This document shows, piece by piece, positions 89 through 41,720 of a DNA stretch of 47,855 bases. The notes under the pieces are model-generated. The model ran no database searches, was not told the DNA's origin, and saw only the letters and a list, made by a program, of their open reading frames with translations. A program made the translations under genes and the position numbers. The DNA comes from Thecamonas trahens ATCC 50062 (lineage: Eukaryota; Protista; Apusomonadida), in assembly GCF_000142905.1 (NCBI RefSeq), contig NW_013657644.1, positions 66,285-114,139 on the forward strand. Direction: 5' to 3'. Each line of letters begins with the position of its first letter. The first letter of the stretch is position 1.

Positions 89-805
89 ATGGCTACATCA
101 CAGTCTGCGCACACACCATCGCGCCGCCTCAAGCCGGCTACGTCCACATCGCAGCCGTGGGCTGATGTGGAAGCAAGGCTCCACGCCCGCGCCCACACCA
201 GAAGAACGCAGCTTCTTGGATCCGAGGCTGCTCGTGACAGGCAGGATGCCGCCGCCGATGGCGCTCTACTTACAAGTCAAGAGCGGCAAGCTGCTGCCCT
301 GCTCCAGGCTCAGCGCTCTGCCGCTGAATCGCTCGACATCGGCGCCGAAACCCTCGCCGAGCTCCACGCCCAGCGCGCAGTCCTCGCCCGCGCTGCCCGC
401 AATCTCGATCGTATCGACGAGCACACTCACGAGTCACGCCGTCTGCTCAACACCATCGGCTCGTGGTTTGGTGGCATCAAGAACATGTTTGTTCGCCGCC
501 GCAAGCCGCTCGCCCGCCCGGATCGCCCGCCTCTCGCCACCATCGATCCCATTGCCTCTCCCGCCGGCTCGACCCGGGCCGCTGCCGGCTCTTCCCACCA
601 AGCTCCGCTAGGAACATCAGCTGGCACAGCTGACGACGACCTTGACTCACTCGCAGCTTCGATCGCTGGCATGAAGGCGATGGCCCTCGAGATGAACACT
701 GAGCTCGATGATCAGAACAAGCTCCTCGACGACATCGCCTACGGCGTCGACGCCGTCAGTCCCAAGATCCGCAACTGCACCCGGCGTGCCATCCGCTACA
801 CCTGA
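89..805 (+). CDS. SNAP25/SNAP29-family Qbc-SNARE
   Basis: Two SNARE heptad motifs with zero-layer Gln (ETLAELHAQRAVL; EMNTELDDQNKLLDDI) and no TM segment. The 'WFGGIKNMF' segment after Qb resembles SNAP29-type proteins. Confidence 0.85.
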   Translation: MATSQSAHTPSRRLKPATSTSQPWADVEARLHARAHTRRTQLLGSEAARDRQDAAADGALLTSQERQAAALLQAQRSAAESLDIGAETLAELHAQRAVLARAARNLDRIDEHTHESRRLLNTIGSWFGGIKNMFVRRRKPLARPDRPPLATIDPIASPAGSTRAAAGSSHQAPLGTSAGTADDDLDSLAASIAGMKAMALEMNTELDDQNKLLDDIAYGVDAVSPKIRNCTRRAIRYT

Positions 806-1159
806 ACATGACCAACACCACACAAAGGCACATCACATCGTCAGCACACATCAGCACGAAGCACATCATCGTCGCATGACCTGCGCCAAACGCCTCGATC
901 ATTGTCCCACACAGGCATCCCTCCCGAAACCACCGACATGCCCGCATCAACAACCACAGCAACGGCACCACCTGCACCACCTGCACCACCACCATCGCCA
1001 CCATCGCCACCATCCCCCCCCTTTCCCTCATCTCCCTCCCCATGCCCTTGAAGGTGCGGGAGCCAACATCAGTCGCCCATTCACTGATCAATCACTGCCA
1101 CCCTCCTCCCCCCCTCTCCGACCCTCCCCACCCGTCTCTCCTCGCACTACCACATCGGC

Positions 1160-3256
1160 ATGCCTACTGACAACGTACAGGTACTTCTACGCATTAGGCC
1201 ACTTGCTAGCGCATGCGGTAGCACCCTGACGGTGAGTGGAGAGCCTGCCCGTCTTCCTGGTGAAGACAAAGCGATTCAAACTTTTGCAAAGTCCGTTACC
1301 CTCCGCCTCGCCCTCCCGGGCACCGTCATACCGCCATCGCCTCTGGCTCTGACTCCTGGTGTGGGTACTACTCAGGCTTCCGACTCGCCTGCACGACCCG
1401 CTGTCAGGCCTTCAACTCCTGCTCGTCGCCGCGGTCATCGGAGGACGCTGTCGACTCCGACAAGGCTGCCTTCCTCCCCGCCGCCGGGCATCTCCGGGCC
1501 GCTCCCGGCGCAGCGTCAGACGCCAAGGATGTCGCGCACGGCGCGGGCCTTTGAGTTTGACGCTGTCCTCGATGAGAACGCCTCGCAAGACAATGTTTAC
1601 TCCCTTGTTGCCCCGTATGTCGCCTCGGTTGTCCGCGATGGCTTCAACGCCACCGTCATGGCTTACGGCCAGACCGGTTCTGGCAAGACCCACACCATGA
1701 TGGGCTCGTCGGCCGCTCCGGGCGTCATCCCACGCGCCATCGACGCGCTCTACGCCCTCATCGAGCAGAGCCCCGAGACAACCTTTATGCTCGACGTCTC
1801 GTTTGTCGAGCTTTACAACGAGAACTTTTTCGATCTGCTCCACCCAGATGGGCCCGAGGCCGCGGCGGCGTCGGGCGACAAGATCGCTGTCCGTGAGGCT
1901 GCCGACAAGTCGACCTTCCTCGCTGTCCGCGATGCATCGGGCCGCTGGGCGGGCAAGTTGCGGACTCCTGTTGCCTCACGCGAGCAGCTCCTCCAGCTGC
2001 TCCACGACGGCATGGCCCGCCGGCGGGTCATGTCCACGCTCATGAACTCGTCGTCATCGCGCTCGCACGCCCTCTTCTCCATCTACGTCGAGTCGTCCGG
2101 CCCGGCTGGTGCCCGTGCCGCCACCCTCCATCTAGTGGACCTAGCCGGAGCCGAGAGCATCAAGGCCTCCGGCGTGACGGGTGTCCACGCTAAGGAGGCG
2201 ACGTCGATCAACAAGTCTCTCTCTGCTCTTGGCGACGTTCTCGCGCACCTCTCAACCGCCCGCCGCACGTCGTCCTCGGCGCCTTACCGCAACTCGCCGC
2301 TCACCTTTTTCCTCCGCGACTCGCTCGGCGGCTCGGCCAAGACCCTGCTCATTGCCACCGTCCGCCAGGAACTCGCGTGCGGGCCGCAGACCAAGTCGGT
2401 CCTGGTCTGGGCCGCCCGCGCCCGCCAAATCTGCAACAAGCCCGTGGTCCATGCTCAGGGCGCCGGCGACTCGCGGATCCGGGCGCTCGAGGCGCAGCTT
2501 GCCCGCAACAACGCTCGCGCTGCCGAGCGCATCTCGCAGCTCGAAGCACTCCTCGCGTCGCGGCCCGACCCGGACGCCTCGTTCAACATGTCGTTTACCG
2601 CCTCGCTCGACGAGCTCGAGGCCGAGAAGCAGCGCGAGGCCGCCGAACGCGAGGCCCTCGAGGCAAAGCTTGCCTTTCTCATCAACGCCCACAACGATGA
2701 GCGTGCCGCCCAGGATGCACGTGTCGCCTCGCTCGAGGCCAAGCTCTCGGCAACCGCTTCCGACCTGAAGACCTCGGAGCAGCGAACGGCCGAGGCGCTT
2801 GCTAATCTTGAGGCTGTCACCGCCTCGCTCAACATCAACAAGGCCGAGGCCGAGGACCATGCCGCCAAGATCCAGGCGCTCACTCGCCAGTGGTGCGACC
2901 ACTCGCGCCTGGCCCAGAAGGAGAGCGCGTCGCTCAAGGCTCGCCTCAAGCGTGAGCACAAGAAGCGCAGAGCCGCCGAGGCCGCCGCTGCTGCCGCCGC
3001 CGCCTCCAACGACACCCTTGCAGCCGAGCTGGCCACTCTCCGCGGCCAGCTCTCCGAGGCGAACGCCCAGGTGAGCTCGGCGTTTGGCCAGATCTCGCGG
3101 CTGCTCGTGAGCGCCAACAAGGCGCAGGCATCCAAGGACTCCCGCATTGCTGAGCTTGAAGCGCTCAACGCCCGCCTCGAGGCCCAGCTCTCGTCCAAGG
3201 ACGTGCCTAGCTCGACGCCTGCCCGTCCGCGCTACCCGCTCGCCGAAGTCAATTGA
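1160..3256 (+). CDS. N-terminal motor kinesin with C-terminal coiled coil (divergent)
   Basis: NVQVLLRIRP, FEFDAV, P-loop GQTGSGKT, switch I SSRSH, switch II DLAGAE, INKSL, PYRNSPLT, DSLGG; heptad-rich tail. Confidence 0.95.
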   Translation: MPTDNVQVLLRIRPLASACGSTLTVSGEPARLPGEDKAIQTFAKSVTLRLALPGTVIPPSPLALTPGVGTTQASDSPARPAVRPSTPARRRGHRRTLSTPTRLPSSPPPGISGPLPAQRQTPRMSRTARAFEFDAVLDENASQDNVYSLVAPYVASVVRDGFNATVMAYGQTGSGKTHTMMGSSAAPGVIPRAIDALYALIEQSPETTFMLDVSFVELYNENFFDLLHPDGPEAAAASGDKIAVREAADKSTFLAVRDASGRWAGKLRTPVASREQLLQLLHDGMARRRVMSTLMNSSSSRSHALFSIYVESSGPAGARAATLHLVDLAGAESIKASGVTGVHAKEATSINKSLSALGDVLAHLSTARRTSSSAPYRNSPLTFFLRDSLGGSAKTLLIATVRQELACGPQTKSVLVWAARARQICNKPVVHAQGAGDSRIRALEAQLARNNARAAERISQLEALLASRPDPDASFNMSFTASLDELEAEKQREAAEREALEAKLAFLINAHNDERAAQDARVASLEAKLSATASDLKTSEQRTAEALANLEAVTASLNINKAEAEDHAAKIQALTRQWCDHSRLAQKESASLKARLKREHKKRRAAEAAAAAAAASNDTLAAELATLRGQLSEANAQVSSAFGQISRLLVSANKAQASKDSRIAELEALNARLEAQLSSKDVPSSTPARPRYPLAEVN

Positions 3257-4667
3257 CGCCGTTTACCTTGCACATCGCCGCCGCTGCCTCAGGCGTCAGC
3301 CCGGCTAGCTCGGTGAGAACCTCCATCGTGGCGCCGCTGTACCGTGGCCGCGACGGGAGCGTCATCCGGACCTTGTGGCCTGCGGGGGGAGCCGCGGCGT
3401 CACGGGCCGCAAGCGTCGGCGCAGGCAGCGGCATGACCGCCTGCGGCTCGTCGCCGAACCGGCCGCCCGGTGGGTTGGCGACAACCTCGTTGAGCGGCAC
3501 CACTCGCGAGACGCACGCGTCCGAGCCGGCAAACACGGCGTCCCATTCGGCGGCGGTCCGCGAGGCAAACGCCGAGGTGAGCGCCGCCCGGAGCGCCGGC
3601 CAGCTCTTGGCCTTGTATTGCGCAGCTGGCTCAACGTCGAGGCCGAGCAGCGCGACGGCTTCGGCAAAGAACTTGGGCTCGATTGCGCCGAGTGCCATGT
3701 ACTCTCCGTCAGCGGTTTGGTAGGTGTCGTAAAACGGGGCCCCCGAGTCAAGAAGATTAGTGCCCGGGCGCGACGGCGCGTACCCACCGGCCTGCGCCAT
3801 GGCGTAGAGGAACGAGCCGATGTACGCCGAACCACTGACCATGTTCGCGTCAACAATCGAGCCGGCTCCGGTCCCACCGGGCGCATCGCGGGCATGCAGC
3901 GCGAGGACGATGCCAAACGCGCACGAGAACGCACCGCCGGCCATGTCGCCGAGCAAGTTGATGGGCGGCGTGGGGGGGGTTGGATGCGGCAGGGCACGGG
4001 CAAAGCATGAGAGCAAGCCGGTTGCGGCCACGTAGTTGATGTCGTGCCCGGCAGCCGTCGCTTCCTCCCCAACCTGCCCGTAGCCGGTCATCCGCGCGTA
4101 GACTAGCCGCGGATTGACCTCTTCACCCATCAGCACTTCTGGCCCGAGCCCTAGCGACTCCATCACACCAGCACGGAACGGCTCGATGACCACGTCCGCG
4201 CTCTGCGCCAGCGCCTTGAACGCTTCCACCTGCTTCGGCACCTTGAGATCGAGGACCACCGACTCTTTACCGCGCGACGTCAGCGTTGTCCCCATGTGTG
4301 GCTCGTGATCGATTGCGTCCGTCTCACCCGCCCGACTGCTCCCGCTTCCCGTCCCGTCGCCGTCGCCTGCATCGCCCGTCGTCTGTGCCGCAGCCGCCGG
4401 CGGCCGATCAATGCGGATGACTCGGGCGCCAAAGTCGGCCAGGACCATGCCGGCCATTGGCGCAGCCGCCAGCCCCTCCAGCTCGAGCACAGTGACGCCG
4501 GCCAGCGGCTGGGCCCGCGCCTCCCACCCCCCACCGCCTTCGCCTGCATCCGCTGCGACACTGCCGGCACAGACACCGCTGCTGGCGCGCACAGACTGCG
4601 CCAAGCCTCCCCATCCGGCTCCCCGCATGGCGAGTCGGACGGTCTTTCGCGAGAAGGCAACCAACAT
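3249..4667 (-). CDS. AMACR: Alpha-methylacyl-CoA racemase (CaiB/BaiF, CoA-transferase family III)
   Basis: PLAGVTVLEL, LADFGARVIRID, RGKESVVLDLK, DVVIEPFRAG, catalytic GHDINY and NLLGDMAGG, NLLDSGAPFYDTY. The first in-frame ATG is 4667 (MLVAFSRKTVRLAMR); 4628 is an alternative. Confidence 0.9.
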   Translation of the reverse strand: MLVAFSRKTVRLAMRGAGWGGLAQSVRASSGVCAGSVAADAGEGGGGWEARAQPLAGVTVLELEGLAAAPMAGMVLADFGARVIRIDRPPAAAAQTTGDAGDGDGTGSGSSRAGETDAIDHEPHMGTTLTSRGKESVVLDLKVPKQVEAFKALAQSADVVIEPFRAGVMESLGLGPEVLMGEEVNPRLVYARMTGYGQVGEEATAAGHDINYVAATGLLSCFARALPHPTPPTPPINLLGDMAGGAFSCAFGIVLALHARDAPGGTGAGSIVDANMVSGSAYIGSFLYAMAQAGGYAPSRPGTNLLDSGAPFYDTYQTADGEYMALGAIEPKFFAEAVALLGLDVEPAAQYKAKSWPALRAALTSAFASRTAAEWDAVFAGSDACVSRVVPLNEVVANPPGGRFGDEPQAVMPLPAPTLAARDAAAPPAGHKVRMTLPSRPRYSGATMEVLTELAGLTPEAAAAMCKVNGVN

Positions 4668-4741
4668 GCCTTGGAATAAAGTCAAGTGTGCTACTCCGAC
4701 ACGCCGCCGCGTGCTGGACGGCTCGGCGGCAACACACGGGT

Positions 4742-5135
4742 TTACTGCTGCGCCTTGAGCGCGTCGGCTTGCAGGCTCATTGAGGTCTCGTGGACAGCCT
4801 CGGCGGCCGCTGTGGCTGCAGCTGTTGCGACCGGGGCAGGCGCGGTTGTGTCGCCAGACTCACTGGAGCCGGCGTCGCTGCGCGTTGGTGCGGTGCCGTT
4901 CGCGCTACCGCCGGGCTGCTGCTGGTGTGCCAGATGAGCACGGGCTTGGGCCATGGCGACGGCCTGGGCCTGGGCCTGGGCCGTAAACTGGGCCTGATGC
5001 TGGTGCATCATGTGCTGCTGGAACGACCAGAGCGACATGGCCTGGTTGGCGGCCTGGATGGCTTGCGAGGCGTGCGCCGAGGCGCTGGCCATGGTAGCCG
5101 CGGGTTCCTCGGCTGCGGGCTGGGACTGCTGCTGG

Positions 5136-5203
<68 letters not shown>

Positions 5204-7416
5204 AGGCTGCTGAGTGGCAGTCTTGTCGTTGCTGCCGTCTGCGGCGACAGGCTGCTGGGCAGCAGGCGGCTGGGCCTGGGCCTGACCGGGAGCAGCCTGT
5301 ACATGGTACATGTGCGAGTATGCCGACTGGACGTAGTGCTGGGCCTGCAGGACCTGGACGTGTGCTGAGGTTGCGGTGCGGGCCTGGCGCTGGGCCACGT
5401 CGTTCATCCACATCTGGCGTTCGGCGGCGTCGGGCCCGTCCCATGCGCCCATCTCCGACTCGGCGAGCTGGAGGTAGTGCCGGTAGTAGGCGTGCTCCAA
5501 GGCAGTTTGGAGCATCATGCCGTTGGCCGAGGCCAGCGCCAGGGCATAGAGGCCGAGATCCTGCGTAATTGCTGCTGCTGCTGCTGCTGCTGCTGCTGAG
5601 GCTGCTGAGTGGCAGTCTTGTCGTTGCTGCCGTCTGCGGCGACAGGCTGCTGGGCAGCAGGCGGCTGGGCCTGGGCCTGACCGGGAGCAGCCTGTACATG
5701 GTACATGTGCGAGTATGCCGACTGGACGTAGTGCTGGGCCTGCAGGACCTGGACGTGTGCTGAGGTTGCGGTGCGGGCCTGGCGCTGGGCCACGTCGTTC
5801 ATCCACATCTGGCGTTCGGCGGCGTCGGGCCCGTCCCATGCGCCCATCTCCGACTCGGCGAGCTGGAGGTAGTGCCGGTAGTAGGCGTGCTCCAAGGCAG
5901 TTTGGAGCATCATGCCGTTGGCCGAGGCCAGCGCCAGGGCATAGTTGTGGATGACGGCGAAAAAGGTAGCTGAGCCCGGCTGGCCCTGCACGCTGGCGGT
6001 CGGTGGCGGATAGCCCGCCGCCGCCGCCGCCGCCGATGCCGCCATCATGGCTTCCTCCGACGAGCCGGTCGACGAGACCGAGCCCATCGACGACGACCGA
6101 TCACGGGTGCCTGTGAGCCCGCCGCCGCCCATGTAGTATCCGCCGCCACCTCCTGCCATCATGTCGGGCGCCATCATGCCGGGCCCCGCCATGCCGGCCA
6201 TCGGCGGCGGGTACGAGTAGAACACAGCGCCGCCGCCGCGCTGATGCGGGACGCCCGGGTAGCCGTACGGAGGAGGATAGTACTGCGCACCGCCGTGGCC
6301 GTGTCCGTGGCCGTGGCCGCGGCCGGGGCCTGCGCTGTACCGGCTCCCGCCCGAGCCGCGGCGCCGCGGCTGCCGCCGCGGCCGGGCCATGGCCACGTTG
6401 ATGACCGCCCCGTTGAGCTGCGACTTGTCGAGCGCGGCGATGGCTGTGGCGCACGACGCCGGCGAGCGGAACTCGACAAAGCCAAAGCCACGCGACGAGC
6501 CGTCGGTGTCGTACACCACCGTGGCCTTGATCACCTCTCCGTGCGCTGCAAAGTGGTGGCGCAGGTTGTACTCGTTGGTTGCCGGATCCAGATGCGCCAC
6601 ATACAGCGTCTTGTTAGGCGGCCGCGTGGGATCAAACGGCTCCGGCTCCGACTCGGCCCGGTGCCGCCGCCCGCTGCCGGCGCTGCTTGCCCGCGGCTGC
6701 GCCCACGAAACGTGTAGGATCGAGTCGTGGATGACAAAGTCGTTGGTGAGCACGTCGCGCGCAAGGACCGCGTCGTCAAACGAGGCAAACTTGACAAAGC
6801 AAAATCCGCGCGATGCGCCGGTCACCGCGTCCCGCTTCAGCGCCAGCGACACAATCCGCGGCACCACCGCGGCCTGGAGCGTGTCAAACAGCTCGTCCTC
6901 ACCCACAGCCACCGGAATCTTCGACACAAAGAGCGTGTCCTTGGACTCGGAGTGCCCCGTCCGCGTCTGCCGCTCGCGAATAACCGGTGCCGGCCCGGCC
7001 AGCGCCGCCTCCTGCCCGGCCCGCGTCTCAAACATCACAAATCCGTAGCCACGGCAGAGGCCCGACTCGGAGTCGCGAACCACGTTGCATCCGACCACGT
7101 TGCCAAATGACGCAAACGCTTGGCGGACCTCGTCCTCAGTCACGGCCGACACTAGATCGCCCACAAAGATCTTGTACGTCCGCGCCGGCCTTGGCCGCGC
7201 TTCGCGCTCCGCACGCCCATTGCTGGCTCCCTCGCTGCTCCCGGTTGCAAGCCCGTTGCCACTGCTCGCCACACCCGCACCTCCTGCACCGGACCCGGGT
7301 GCACCGGCCTCGACTCCACCAGCTTCAGCTGCTCCGGCCGCTTCTGCCATTTCCGCCATCCCCGTCATCCCCGTCGGTGTCTGCCCAGCTGGCGGACTTG
7401 AAGTCGCTGTCGCCAT
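4742..7416 (-). CDS. Three-RRM RNA-binding protein with Q/A/M/Y-rich low-complexity C-terminus; frame broken by an internal 395-bp duplication
   Basis: RNP2/RNP1 pairs KIFVGDL/RGYGFVMF, TLFVSKI/RGFCFVKF and TLYVAHL/RGFGFVEF. ORFs 5515-7485 and 4742-5839 join into one frame if one repeat unit is removed. The start is uncertain (first ATG 7416). Confidence 0.8.
5138..5203. repeat. (CTG)n/(CAG)n microsatellite encoding polyglutamine
   Basis: Uninterrupted ctg run of roughly 20 units seen directly. Confidence 0.95.
5176..5944. repeat. Tandem direct duplication of about 374 bp (period 395) with a 21-nt unique spacer at 5550-5570
   Basis: 5176-5549 and 5571-5944 appear identical by eye; both end in gccagggcatag. 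Confidence 0.9.
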
Positions 7417-7730: not shown

Positions 7731-7979
7731 NNNNNNNNNNNNNNNNNNNNNNNNNNNNNNNNNNNNNNNNNNNNNNNNNNNNNNNNNNNNNNNNNNNNNN
7801 NNNNNNNNNNNNNNNNNNNNNNNNNNNNNNNNNNNNNNNNNNNNNNNNNNNNNNNNNNNNNNNNNNNNNNNNNNNNNNNNNNNNNNNNNNNNNNNNNNNN
7901 NNNNNNNNNNNNNNNNNNNNNNNNNNNNNNNNNNNNNNNNNNNNNNNNNNNNNNNNNNNNNNNNNNNNNNNNNNNNNNN
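7731..7979. other. Assembly gap (N run)
   Basis: N characters. Confidence 1.
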
Positions 7980-24762: not shown

Positions 24763-25758
24763 NNNNNNNNNNNNNNNNNNNNNNNNNNNNNNNNNNNNNN
24801 NNNNNNNNNNNNNNNNNNNNNNNNNNNNNNNNNNNNNNNNNNNNNNNNNNNNNNNNNNNNNNNNNNNNNNNNNNNNNNNNNNNNNNNNNNNNNNNNNNNN
24901 NNNNNNNNNNNNNNNNNNNNNNNNNNNNNNNNNNNNNNNNNNNNNNNNNNNNNNNNNNNNNNNNNNNNNNNNNNNNNNNNNNNNNNNNNNNNNNNNNNNN
25001 NNNNNNNNNNNNNNNNNNNNNNNNNNNNNNNNNNNNNNNNNNNNNNNNNNNNNNNNNNNNNNNNNNNNNNNNNNNNNNNNNNNNNNNNNNNNNNNNNNNN
25101 NNNNNNNNNNNNNNNNNNNNNNNNNNNNNNNNNNNNNNNNNNNNNNNNNNNNNNNNNNNNNNNNNNNNNNNNNNNNNNNNNNNNNNNNNNNNNNNNNNNN
25201 NNNNNNNNNNNNNNNNNNNNNNNNNNNNNNNNNNNNNNNNNNNNNNNNNNNNNNNNNNNNNNNNNNNNNNNNNNNNNNNNNNNNNNNNNNNNNNNNNNNN
25301 NNNNNNNNNNNNNNNNNNNNNNNNNNNNNNNNNNNNNNNNNNNNNNNNNNNNNNNNNNNNNNNNNNNNNNNNNNNNNNNNNNNNNNNNNNNNNNNNNNNN
25401 NNNNNNNNNNNNNNNNNNNNNNNNNNNNNNNNNNNNNNNNNNNNNNNNNNNNNNNNNNNNNNNNNNNNNNNNNNNNNNNNNNNNNNNNNNNNNNNNNNNN
25501 NNNNNNNNNNNNNNNNNNNNNNNNNNNNNNNNNNNNNNNNNNNNNNNNNNNNNNNNNNNNNNNNNNNNNNNNNNNNNNNNNNNNNNNNNNNNNNNNNNNN
25601 NNNNNNNNNNNNNNNNNNNNNNNNNNNNNNNNNNNNNNNNNNNNNNNNNNNNNNNNNNNNNNNNNNNNNNNNNNNNNNNNNNNNNNNNNNNNNNNNNNNN
25701 NNNNNNNNNNNNNNNNNNNNNNNNNNNNNNNNNNNNNNNNNNNNNNNNNNNNNNNNNN
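24763..25758. other. Assembly gap (N run)
   Basis: N characters. Confidence 1.
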
Positions 25759-27632: not shown

Positions 27633-27984
27633 NNNNNNNNNNNNNNNNNNNNNNNNNNNNNNNNNNNNNNNNNNNNNNNNNNNNNNNNNNNNNNNNNNNN
27701 NNNNNNNNNNNNNNNNNNNNNNNNNNNNNNNNNNNNNNNNNNNNNNNNNNNNNNNNNNNNNNNNNNNNNNNNNNNNNNNNNNNNNNNNNNNNNNNNNNNN
27801 NNNNNNNNNNNNNNNNNNNNNNNNNNNNNNNNNNNNNNNNNNNNNNNNNNNNNNNNNNNNNNNNNNNNNNNNNNNNNNNNNNNNNNNNNNNNNNNNNNNN
27901 NNNNNNNNNNNNNNNNNNNNNNNNNNNNNNNNNNNNNNNNNNNNNNNNNNNNNNNNNNNNNNNNNNNNNNNNNNNNNNNNNNNN
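27633..27984. other. Assembly gap (N run)
   Basis: N characters. Confidence 1.
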
Positions 27985-28050: not shown

Positions 28051-30852
28051 ATGAGCACGGTCAAGCAAGCCGAGGATGAGGCTGCTGCGGCCATGGCCAG
28101 CAGTGGCGACGGGCCGGGCGCCGAAGAGGAGACCAACGACAACAACGCCAGCGAGACCGGGACGCCCGCCGCAGACGCTATTGAAGGCGAAGGTGAAGGC
28201 GAAGGCGAGGGTGAGGTGGTAGAGGAGGTTGTGGAGGTAGAGGAGGTTGTGGAGGACCCGGAGGAGTTGCTTCGGGCACGGCTGGTGGAAGAGTATCCCG
28301 TGGTACGGCAGCTCGGGGTGTGCCCGCCGTGGGCGCCGGCGACGGTGCCGACGGTGGCGCTGCCCAAGGCCAAGGCGCTGGCGGGCGGACGGGTCGGCAA
28401 GGCCAAGTCAGTTGTGGTGGGCCTGGACTGGACTTCGGAGATGCCTGTTGATCTTGATGCATATGCCCTGCTGTTTGATGAGGCCGGTGAGCTCATGGAG
28501 ATGGTGTACTACGACGCACTGGTCTCTCACTCGGGTGCTATCCAACACATGGGTGACAACCGGACGGGTGGTCCCGATGGAGACGACGAGTCCGCGTATG
28601 ACGATGACGCCGCCGTCGACGACGAGAGCTCGATGCCGCCGCCGCTGACACAGATTAGGGTCACCTCGCCGTCGATCCTCTCGTTTGCACCCGACGACGA
28701 CGACGAGGCAGGCTCGGCCGAAAGCGGCGGTGGCGACGGCAGTGGAGGAACTTCCGGTGAAGAGAGCGCAAAGCCTGAGCACTCGCCCCTCGAAGACGAC
28801 GACGAGAGCATCCGCATCCGCTGGGGCCTTCTCGACGACTCGGTTCACGCGGTTATGATTGTGGTCAACTCGTTCTCGGGCCAGACCTTTGCGCAGATTC
28901 CCGAGTGCAAGCTCCGCATCTACGCCACACCCAAGGGCCTCCCGGGCATCGAAGACGACGACGACGAAGAGTCGATTGATGGCGACGACGATGATGACGA
29001 GTACGATGACAACGCGTCAGCATGCACCGACGACTACTACGACGACGACCGATCGGTGGCGTCGGCTGACATGCGGTCTTCGTCCCGGCTCAGCTCCCGC
29101 GCCGGCTCGCGCGCTGGCTCCCGCGCCGGCTCGCGCGCCGGCTCGCGCGCAGCGTCCCGGGTTGGCTCTCGCGCCGGCTCGCGTGCTGCCTCGCGGGGAT
29201 CTTCGCGCTCTGAATCGCACTCACGCTCGCGCCAGACGGCGTCGACTGCGTCAGACGGCTCACTCGACGAAGACGCCGAGGCTGCGGCTGCGGCCGCGGC
29301 TGATGCCAAAGGCAATGCTGATGGCGCAGCAGAGACACCCACTGACGAGCCTCTTGAGCCCGAGGAGGACCCGCTGCAGGAGTTCCTTGTGCTAGACGTG
29401 GCGTGCGAGTCGGACGCAACAACGCTTGTGGTGGGCACGTTCTTCCGGGCACTCGCACCCAATTGGATGCTTCCTCCCAAGCCCAAGGCCGAGGCGGCCG
29501 ATGGCGACGGCGACGGTGACGGCGACGGTGACGGCGACAGTGAGGCTAGAGCCGATGGTGCCGACGAGATCGCCGACGAAGGCTACTCGCAGTACGACGA
29601 GTACAACGACTCGCGGTCGTCGTACGGCGGCGAGGCTGCTCTGAGTGGTGGTGGTGGGTATAGCGGGTCCGAGAGCGACGGCGAGGATGGCCAAGACGGC
29701 GACGACGACGACGACCCGGGCTACGGGCCGGACGGAGTGTGGCACTTTGCGCCGTCGGGTGTGGTGGCCATGGGCAACTCGGTGGAGGAGATGCTGCCGC
29801 AGCTTGTGGTTGCCCTCGCGCCATTCACCAAGGGCATCGAGCCGTACGTGCCGAAGCATCTTGCCGCGGCCGAGAGCGACAGCAAGGAGCAAGTCGAGCT
29901 CGACGAGGGAACACTCAAGCGCGGACTCTCGCTGGTGGCCAAGACCCGGTCCGGGCTGCAATGGGCGTACACCCAGCTGTTTCTGGCCAAGGGCAGCTGG
30001 CACAATCTGGGCCTGCTGACAAGCTACAAGTTGCTGCGGTATGTGCACCTGCCCCACAACGCGTTCACGGACGTGAGCCCGCTCAACGCGCTCGACGACC
30101 TCATGGAGCTGGTCATGCCGCACAACCGGGTCGGCGACTCTTGGCTGGCGCTCACGCCGCGCCGGTGGCTGGAGAGTGTCGACCTTGGCCACAACAAGGT
30201 GGCGGCGCTCTCGCCGATCGTCCACCCCTCCCTCCGGTCGCTCAACCTCTCGCACAACCGGGTGACCCAGATCGAGCACCTCGAAGACGCGACTCACCTC
30301 GGAAAGCTGGCGCTCAACCACAACGCTATCTCGTCGCTCCGCGGCGTGACAGCCCCGCATCTGAAGGAGCTGCACCTCTCGTACAACACAATCCGGCTGG
30401 TTGGCGCGGCAGCGATGCCCTCGCTCAGGGTCCTCGTTCTAACCCACAACAACATCCGTTTGACATCCGGCCTCGAGGCGCTCCCTGCGCTGGAGATCCT
30501 CAACCTGGCGTTCAACGACGTGAACGACTTGGACCAGGTGGCGGCTCTCGGCGCACTGCCGCGGCTGACGTGGCTCTCGCTTGTCGAGAACCCGATCTCG
30601 TTCTCGGAAGAGCTTGGGCCCGACTACCGCCTCGAGGTGCTGATGGCGATCAAGACGCTCACCGTCCTCGACGAGATGGTGGTTGACTCTGGTGAGCGCG
30701 AAGACGCCGACGAGCTGACCAAGGAGCGTGAGGCTGCCGCCAACCCGTCATCCGACGCCGACCGCGATCACGACTCGGACAACGAGTACGACGACAACAG
30801 CTTTGACGGCGACAACAACGAGTATGATGACGGCTACGATGACTACGACTAG
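28051..30852 (+). CDS. TerD-domain / LRRC23-like leucine-rich-repeat fusion protein (933 aa)
   Basis: TerD motifs VGLDW, VDLDA, VYY, SGAIQHMGDNRTG..DGDDE, ESIRI, VVNSFSGQTF and WHF. These are followed by LKRGLSLVAKTRSGLQWAY...LLRYVHLPHN and SDS22-type LRRs with an LRR cap (ENPI..DYRLEV..LTVLD). Confidence 0.8.
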   Translation: MSTVKQAEDEAAAAMASSGDGPGAEEETNDNNASETGTPAADAIEGEGEGEGEGEVVEEVVEVEEVVEDPEELLRARLVEEYPVVRQLGVCPPWAPATVPTVALPKAKALAGGRVGKAKSVVVGLDWTSEMPVDLDAYALLFDEAGELMEMVYYDALVSHSGAIQHMGDNRTGGPDGDDESAYDDDAAVDDESSMPPPLTQIRVTSPSILSFAPDDDDEAGSAESGGGDGSGGTSGEESAKPEHSPLEDDDESIRIRWGLLDDSVHAVMIVVNSFSGQTFAQIPECKLRIYATPKGLPGIEDDDDEESIDGDDDDDEYDDNASACTDDYYDDDRSVASADMRSSSRLSSRAGSRAGSRAGSRAGSRAASRVGSRAGSRAASRGSSRSESHSRSRQTASTASDGSLDEDAEAAAAAAADAKGNADGAAETPTDEPLEPEEDPLQEFLVLDVACESDATTLVVGTFFRALAPNWMLPPKPKAEAADGDGDGDGDGDGDSEARADGADEIADEGYSQYDEYNDSRSSYGGEAALSGGGGYSGSESDGEDGQDGDDDDDPGYGPDGVWHFAPSGVVAMGNSVEEMLPQLVVALAPFTKGIEPYVPKHLAAAESDSKEQVELDEGTLKRGLSLVAKTRSGLQWAYTQLFLAKGSWHNLGLLTSYKLLRYVHLPHNAFTDVSPLNALDDLMELVMPHNRVGDSWLALTPRRWLESVDLGHNKVAALSPIVHPSLRSLNLSHNRVTQIEHLEDATHLGKLALNHNAISSLRGVTAPHLKELHLSYNTIRLVGAAAMPSLRVLVLTHNNIRLTSGLEALPALEILNLAFNDVNDLDQVAALGALPRLTWLSLVENPISFSEELGPDYRLEVLMAIKTLTVLDEMVVDSGEREDADELTKEREAAANPSSDADRDHDSDNEYDDNSFDGDNNEYDDGYDDYD
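29095..29200 (+). repeat. 12-bp coding minisatellite encoding (SRAG)n
   Basis: tc(c/g)cgcgc(c/t)ggc units give SRAGSRAGSRAGSRAGSRAASRVGSRAGSRAASRG. Confidence 0.85.
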
Positions 30853-41345: not shown

Positions 41346-41720
41346 NNNNNNNNNNNNNNNNNNNNNNNNNNNNNNNNNNNNNNNNNNNNNNNNNNNNNNN
41401 NNNNNNNNNNNNNNNNNNNNNNNNNNNNNNNNNNNNNNNNNNNNNNNNNNNNNNNNNNNNNNNNNNNNNNNNNNNNNNNNNNNNNNNNNNNNNNNNNNNN
41501 NNNNNNNNNNNNNNNNNNNNNNNNNNNNNNNNNNNNNNNNNNNNNNNNNNNNNNNNNNNNNNNNNNNNNNNNNNNNNNNNNNNNNNNNNNNNNNNNNNNN
41601 NNNNNNNNNNNNNNNNNNNNNNNNNNNNNNNNNNNNNNNNNNNNNNNNNNNNNNNNNNNNNNNNNNNNNNNNNNNNNNNNNNNNNNNNNNNNNNNNNNNN
41701 NNNNNNNNNNNNNNNNNNNN
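41346..41720. other. Assembly gap (N run)
   Basis: N characters. Confidence 1.

Follow-up and report, generated by a model that had tools for sequence, protein, structure and literature searches.

A TerD domain fused to an LRRC23-like leucine-rich repeat module in Thecamonas trahens: a candidate calcium sensor of the flagellar axoneme

In mammals, the head of radial spoke 3 (RS3) is built from one AK9, two AK7, and two LRRC23 subunits, and in the mouse two catalytic sites of AK9 are plugged by the N-terminal β-hairpins that the LRRC23 copies contribute (preprint 10.1101/2025.05.19.654877). The surface of the head that is directed toward the central pair is highly acidic (same preprint). LRRC23 orthologs follow the species that possess an RS3 head (PMC10721216), and in Tetrahymena two paralogs with Glu-rich tails, Lrrc23A and Lrrc23B, have both been proposed as parts of this head (PMC12399478). 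Here we describe a gene of the apusomonad Thecamonas trahens ATCC 50062 in which an LRRC23-like leucine-rich repeat (LRR) module follows a TerD domain, a fold with solved bacterial structures from Klebsiella pneumoniae (2kxt) and Streptomyces (3ibz). The gene lies within a window of 47,855 nucleotides (contig NW_013657644.1, positions 66,285 to 114,139 of the forward strand), to which all coordinates refer unless another contig is named. Eukaryotic TerD proteins of the Dictyostelium CABP1/capA type stand alone, without an LRR or axonemal module.

The gene occupies positions 28051..30852 (+) as a single open reading frame of 933 codons followed by a stop, and its product has a net charge of about -124. 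The assembly that we scanned (28.7 Mb in 131 contigs) is ~65% G+C, at which stop codons are expected at ~0.025 per codon, as estimated from base composition, such that an open run of 933 codons is far beyond chance. Both the uninterrupted frame and the hallmark motifs of TerD had been noted in a first-pass annotation made from the sequence alone, and both are borne out: all of the motifs that it quoted are found where it placed them, namely, GLDW (aa 124-127), DLDA (aa 134-137), GDNRTG..DGDDE (aa 168-180), ESIRI (aa 252-256), NSFSGQTF (aa 273-280), and WHF (aa 564-566). The identical 933-aa sequence is present in the ESM Atlas, and the exact sequence is absent from a collection of 15 billion proteins.

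The C-terminal part of the protein comprises an LRRC23-like module (aa 607-893; 29869..30729, +) with an N-terminal β-hairpin, LRRs, and an LRR cap. Among solved chains, the best phmmer matches to aa 607-906 are to LRRC23 (9d2f_B, E = 7.6e-35; 9fqr_Xm, E = 1.2e-34), covering residues 37-339 of the LRRC23 chain, and the next are to LRGUK (9.5e-21) and SDS22 (~1e-16). The corresponding PDB scores of 123.6 bits for LRRC23, 77 for LRGUK, and 63 for SDS22 uphold the earlier recognition of this segment as LRRC23-like, rather than as LRGUK or SDS22. The same separation is seen in a maximum-likelihood tree, which took in no SDS22 rows: an LRGUK-like clan is split with support of 100/99 from the LRRC23 side, where both the window protein and its marine relative (described below) are placed. 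The annotation had also set the motif LKRGLSLVAKTRSGLQWAY (aa 622-640, nt 29914-29970) beside a motif given as that of human LRRC23; the latter motif does align to this stretch in 9fqr_Xm, an entry from bovine sperm.

Structure prediction agrees with the sequence matches. An AlphaFold2 (AF2) model of the LRR half (aa 555-933; predicted local distance difference test [pLDDT] 83, predicted template modeling score 0.74) aligned by VIA with bovine sperm LRRC23 (9fqr_Xm) at a Z of 30.1, with 272/276 residues aligned at a root mean square deviation (rmsd) of 2.4 Å, and with LRRC23 of mouse RS3 (9d2f_B) at a Z of 29.1 (283/288 residues, rmsd 2.4 Å). The next fold matches were FAP246, a near tie on Z (28.4) but with an rmsd of 4.2, and SDS22 (Z 26). 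The β-hairpin at the start of the module (aa 622-644, with strands at 626-631 and 638-644; 29914..29982, +) is predicted with a pLDDT of >90, and its motif, GLSLVAKTRSGLQWAY (GLSxLxKTGxGLxHAY), aligns across 19 LRRC23-family rows. The protein thus resembles LRRC23 of the mammalian RS3 head and of Tetrahymena in sequence and fold over nearly the whole LRRC23 chain, and it shares the N-terminal hairpin motif, the capped LRR array, and an acidic C-terminal tail. This tail is rich in Tyr and Asp (aa 894-933; 30730..30849, +; 17 D+E and 1 K+R), and similar tails end both the marine relative and a second LRRC23 gene of T. trahens. Unlike LRRC23, in which a short acidic N terminus of about 36-40 residues precedes the module, the window protein carries ~600 residues of acidic leader and insert-laden TerD domain, and its location in RS3 is only predicted.

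The second LRRC23 gene, which is devoid of TerD and is the canonical LRRC23 ortholog of this genome, lies on contig C30 (locus 1480-2607, +) and matches 9fqr_Xm with 220 bits (E = 4.1e-64), compared to 123 bits for the TerD-LRR gene, with which it is 37% identical. The reciprocal best match to LRRC23 that the annotation had expected for the window gene therefore falls to the C30 gene, and because the latter is the better LRRC23 match, we infer that the TerD-LRR gene is a diverged, long-branch paralog of LRRC23 and not its ortholog. A clade uniting the TerD-LRR gene, its marine relative, and the C30 gene was neither established nor rejected by the approximately unbiased test (P = 0.178). A third member of the LRR group in this genome is an LRGUK/FAP246-like gene on contig C25 (1465-2472, +; 1.5e-42 to LRGUK).

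Recognition of the complete TerD domain is complicated by three long inserts. The Pfam TerD family (PF02342), whose presence the annotation had predicted, is matched with 60 bits against a cutoff of 25.3 (E = 2.8e-16), although in one piece only the first half of the profile is aligned (aa 117-188 to profile positions 19-97). A local profile, built from the six TerD domains of a T. trahens "stress protein" on contig C9, matches the frame collinearly at aa 117-182, 246-291, and 439-473, and upon removal of the three inserts these fuse into a single TerD match of 90.9 bits (E = 3.5e-30; profile positions 18-160). The domain is accordingly divided into four pieces. Piece A (aa 105-182; 28363..28596, +; pLDDT 85-93) contains both acidic motifs of the Ca2+ site and aligns residue by residue with Klebsiella TerD 2kxt (E = 5.9e-8); piece B (aa 246-296; 28786..28938, +; pLDDT 79-92) corresponds to positions 76-122 of the local profile, and piece C (aa 439-473; 29365..29469, +), which is 54% identical to the marine relative, to positions 126-161. 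Piece D (aa 560-592; 29728..29826, +; pLDDT 78-88) supplies the last strand (VWHFAPSG) and the C-terminal helix, and other TerD domains align to it with their W-x-F strand and helix; its strand (aa 560-575) is 56% identical to that of the marine relative, and its helix falls within a stretch (aa 576-615) that is 58% identical.

An AF2 model of the TerD half (aa 100-615) has a confident core (pLDDT 79-93) at aa 113-175, 250-297, 446-466, and 564-592, with pLDDT values of <50 through nearly all of the three inserts. Strong VIA-align matches to this model are exclusively TerD folds, with Z values of 13.0-18.7 (2kxt, 3ibz, 2qz7, 2qng, and 9a6r_B, plus the Chlamydomonas radial spoke head protein RSP1), and the next match has a Z of 4.5. 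Profile and model together indicate that aa ~105-592 make up an entire TerD β-sandwich, whose strands follow one another in the expected order and which is split by the three inserts. The domain is like the bacterial TerD proteins of Klebsiella and Streptomyces in its β-sandwich fold (Z 13-15) and in its GDNRTG..DGDDE and DLD motifs, and unlike them in being eukaryotic, in standing outside a ter operon, and in carrying three long disordered loop inserts and an LRR fusion.

The Ca2+ sites of Klebsiella TerD are formed by residues 40, 41, 42, 78, 79, and 89 (Ca1) and residues 29, 82, 84, and 88 (Ca2) (PMC8779313, citing Pan et al. 2011). When mapped onto the 933-aa protein through the HMMER alignment to 2kxt, the counterparts are D134, L135, D136, D169, N170, and E180 for Ca1 and W127, G173, P175, and D179 for Ca2, all of them in piece A. 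Nine of these 10 residues are identical to those of Klebsiella, the sole change being from G84 to P175. We take G84 to be a backbone ligand, the cited text giving residue numbers only. As judged from its residues, the bipartite Ca2+-binding motif is intact, and the domain is predicted to be Ca2+ competent. Since 9/10 site residues are retained and the remainder of the domain is conserved at the protein level in the marine relative, the Ca2+ site may well be under selection, the relative's own site residues lying outside that comparison.

The inserts account for most of the net charge of the protein. Insert 1 (aa 183-245; 28597..28785, +), recognized as a gap between collinear profile matches, is acidic and disordered (pLDDT <50); it follows immediately upon the DGDDES Ca2+ motif and is itself closed by a second DDDES, has a G+C content at third codon positions (GC3) of 0.73, and contains no splice-donor motif. 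Insert 2 (aa 297-438; 28939..29364, +) is composed of an acidic run, then Ser-Arg-Ala-Gly repeats, and then an Ala-rich run, and its pLDDT is low, mostly <50, with one weak strand call (model residues 236-244, pLDDT about 50-57). Within it is an in-frame minisatellite at 29093-29195, in which a 12-bp unit encoding Ser-Arg-Ala-Gly is repeated 8.6 times. At the same position, the open frame of the marine relative encodes a RSGSRAASRSGSRAS run and then GGE repeats; a Ser-Arg run at this point is thus present in the relative as well, and another is found in a loop of a gene on contig C68 (see below). Insert 3 (aa 474-559; 29470..29727, +) is rich in Asp, Gly, and Tyr and disordered (pLDDT <50), and it includes an in-frame minisatellite of 6/12-bp units encoding Asp-Gly at 29499-29543. 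Its identity to the marine relative is 21%, yet it is open and acidic in both.

The frame kept in the relative, repeats whose periods are divisible by three, and the lack of a GTRAG donor at any insert border speak against the inserts being introns, and we reject this reading. In GC3, moreover, the inserts (0.71-0.77) match TerD pieces A and C, with the LRR part at 0.88. Since the repeats are in frame, donors are missing, GC3 is that of the flanking TerD pieces, and the frame is open in the relative, we conclude that the three inserts are most probably translated, disordered, repeat-derived loops in the TerD fold.

The marine relative is a 482-aa fragment, 54% identical to the window protein and its only close relative in 1.84 billion representative proteins; among the best 150 matches in that set it alone shares the TerD-LRRC23 architecture, which is thus not widely catalogued. 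Near-identical versions of it were recovered from three separate ENA marine metagenomes, one of which belongs to the Tara Oceans project (PRJEB4352). The metagenome contigs are 1.7-2.0 kb in length, and all three break inside the repeat-rich insert; the frame leaves the 5' end of the contig through the Ser-Arg run and GGE repeats and, in the other direction, goes on to encode the final strands of TerD, an acidic insert 3, the linker, and the LRR module. Comparisons with the relative accordingly cover the C-terminal part of the protein and exclude the Ca2+-site residues. The two proteins are 54-63% identical over the strands of TerD, the linker, and the LRRs. A short linker of 14 residues (aa 593-606; 29827..29868, +) joins TerD to the LRRC23-like module, and because aa 576-615, which include it, are 58% identical, the TerD-to-LRR junction is under protein-level constraint in two species. 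That TerD and an LRRC23-family module form one conserved coding unit is thereby supported, and the sequence evidence indicates a gene that is real, consists of a single exon, and is conserved in the marine relative. The relative is uncultured and marine, and to call it an apusomonad is only a guess.

Other searches added no further cases. Scans of JGI metagenomes with the TerD N-half and with an alignment of the C-terminal half yielded no relatives. Homolog searches of 5.8 billion sequences with the whole protein, with aa 105-295, and with aa 105-296 returned nothing useful; candidates were swamped by low-complexity words, and a TerD half-domain cannot reach the E value needed in a database of this size. 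No description of a TerD-LRRC23 fusion was found in the literature searched. Although both domain families are known, their combination appears to be undescribed and so far occurs in T. trahens and one marine relative.

TerD folds also occur in other radial spoke proteins. The T. trahens TerD profile matches Chlamydomonas RSP1 (814 aa; 7jrj_F/7jtk_A/8glv) with an E value of 1.8e-15, and TerD-like stretches are located at residues 16-169 and 353-531 of that protein. The window TerD model aligns with chain A of 7jtk, a structure of Chlamydomonas RS1, at a Z of 16.1 over 185 residues; because 7jtk also contains the sequence of RSP1, we assume that this chain is RSP1. RSP1 shares with the window protein the TerD fold and, in its second TerD-like domain, a long insert in the loop that holds insert 2, but its Ca2+ motif is degenerate, without GDNRTG..GDDE, and it has no LRR. 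The partner module in RSP1 is reported to consist of MORN repeats, and RSP1 belongs to RS1 and RS2, not RS3. No mention of TerD together with RSP1 was found in the literature searched.

In T. trahens itself, a scan detected 14 TerD matches on six contigs. Frames on C23 and C6 contain TerD and no other Pfam family, the C23 frame having several TerD repeats and a Cys-rich tail at its end. On contig C68, a 1270-aa frame (391-4200, +) has an NDK domain and a Dpy-30 motif and, upstream of these, three degenerate TerD-like domains. Among solved structures it matches Chlamydomonas RSP23 (1.6e-43) and NME5 best, and it is the only NDK plus Dpy-30 gene of the NME5/RSP23 type found in this genome. Like the window gene, it has TerD-like domains N-terminal to a radial-spoke-type protein, with acidic or Ser-Arg inserts; unlike it, these domains are degenerate, without the GDNRTG..GDDE motif, and the partner is a spoke-neck kinase and not LRRC23. 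The C68 domains show no significant similarity that would link them specifically to the window TerD (E values of 0.1 or worse), the two being alike only in the style of their inserts. Among the spoke-linked TerD copies of Thecamonas, the Ca2+ ligands are kept only in the copy that adjoins the LRRC23 hairpin.

The genome also encodes the partners expected of an RS3 head. An AK9 ortholog on contig C48 matches mouse AK9 (9d2f_A) with an E value of 1.2e-106, and an AK7-like ADK-RIIa protein, CFAP91, and CFAP61 are encoded as well, such that a two-paralog RS3 head is plausible in T. trahens. The AK9 ortholog is contained in two long frames (2-2917 and 3510-6386, +) that are ~600 bases apart, therefore implying an intron, a frame break, or two exons, and the first of these frames also carries ADK and Hydin_ADK domains.

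Taken together, we tentatively favor the view that the TerD-LRR protein serves the RS3 head as a second subunit of the LRRC23 type, whose putatively Ca2+-competent TerD domain and acidic loops would lie beside the hairpin that plugs AK9. The protein would most likely fill one of the two LRRC23 positions on AK9, the arrangement proposed for Tetrahymena Lrrc23A and Lrrc23B. The TerD domain ends 30 residues upstream of the LRRC23-type hairpin; the domain and its acidic loops would thus lie immediately upstream of the hairpin that plugs AK9, on the negatively charged side of the head that looks toward the central pair, and the net charge of -124 fits the acidic-surface theme of the RS3 head. Binding of Ca2+ by TerD could alter how the hairpin or the head surface engages partners. 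The fusion could in this way place Ca2+ binding directly on RS3, as the annotation proposed, and the role of a flagellar calcium sensor is a good hypothesis for the predicted protein.

The main rival to an RS3-head subunit is a paralog whose function has changed, in which a duplicated LRRC23 gained a mobile TerD domain and became a Ca2+-responsive LRR scaffold of the cytoplasm or cortex, unrelated to spokes. We consider this unlikely, although it is a serious contender, and several observations speak for it or against the favored reading. The canonical LRRC23 is kept elsewhere, as the better-scoring C30 gene, and in the tree the stem that leads to the window gene and its marine relative is very long (2.37), which is compatible with a change of function. 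With TerD on six contigs, the domain is promiscuous in this genome, and fusion to it alone does not imply a flagellar role; furthermore, the window TerD is closest to the TerD domains of the C9 "stress protein" and of C6, and not to the spoke-linked ones. Also against the favored reading, the 63-aa insert 1 directly follows the last Ca2+ ligand, and one ligand position has changed from Gly to Pro. Several features speak against a scaffold remote from the axoneme: the LRRC23-specific hairpin is kept in both species, the fold match covers 272/276 residues of the module at an rmsd of 2.4, and the acidic tail is like that of the C30 ortholog. Two LRRC23 paralogs in one RS3 head have a proposed precedent in Tetrahymena, and TerD folds are present in two other spoke proteins.

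A protein that is axonemal but does not sense Ca2+ is improbable. Here, the β-sandwich of TerD and the acidic loops would contribute no more than bulk and negative charge to the spoke head, which is probably also the part played by the degenerate TerD folds of RSP1. The TerD-like domains of both RSP1 and C68 are without GDNRTG..GDDE, the charge of the window protein resides mostly in its inserts, one of which adjoins the Ca2+ loop, and RS3 head proteins are described as acidic in domains and loops (preprint 10.1101/2025.05.19.654877). What counts against mere bulk is that the window TerD, unlike RSP1 and C68, keeps nine of the 10 Ca2+-site residues.

That the gene model is an artifact, either of two adjacent genes (TerD, then LRR) or of low-complexity introns that stay open in a GC-rich genome, is very improbable: stop codons are few in GC-rich DNA and the GC3 of the inserts lies below that of the LRR part, but this is outweighed by the 933 stop-free codons, the repeat periods in multiples of three, the lack of GTRAG donors at insert borders, the GC3 that pieces A and C share with the inserts, the relative's frame, which is open through different insert sequences and conserved across the TerD-LRR junction, and the identical sequence in the ESM Atlas.

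A broader reading of the RS3-head subunit is more speculative still and, in our estimation, quite doubtful. Three cases, Chlamydomonas RSP1, Thecamonas NME5/RSP23, and the Thecamonas LRRC23 paralog, would make TerD β-sandwiches a recurrent and hitherto unnoticed accessory module of radial spokes across distant eukaryotes. If, in addition, Ca2+ at the Thecamonas LRRC23 paralog were to control either the adenylate-kinase activity of the RS3 head or the contact of that head with the central pair, the result would be a calmodulin-independent Ca2+ input to spoke signaling. The known Ca2+ inputs to control by the radial spokes and central pair are calmodulin based.

The remainder of the gene and its surroundings can be described briefly. 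The N-terminal region (aa 1-104; 28051..28362, +) is acidic and of low complexity (27 D+E and 4 K+R), matches no family, and contains short in-frame tandem repeats at 28182-28264. An assembly gap of 352 bases (27633-27984), flanked by a C-run and a CA-repeat, ends 66 bases 5' of the ATG of the TerD-LRR gene, so the promoter and any earlier start are hidden. Three further runs of N are present in the window, at 7731-7979, 24763-25758, and 41346-41720. The neighboring genes are ordinary housekeeping genes, encoding a proteasome β subunit, a DHHC palmitoyltransferase, and a USP7-like protease; around this eukaryotic locus there are no terZABCDE-type neighbors. The sole match to the X-box (RFX) motif in the window lies elsewhere than at the TerD-LRR gene and is at chance level. 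Upstream of the C30 LRRC23 gene, an X-box match with one mismatch is not significant.

[quoted passage not shown] Should the TerD-LRR protein not be axonemal, it would add one more case to the shuffling of TerD domains in Thecamonas, and its interest would be modest. An axonemal location, in contrast, would provide a directly testable link from Ca2+ to ATP regeneration, and the TerD folds of RSP1 and NME5/RSP23 indicate that the connection between TerD and the spokes may exceed one odd fusion.

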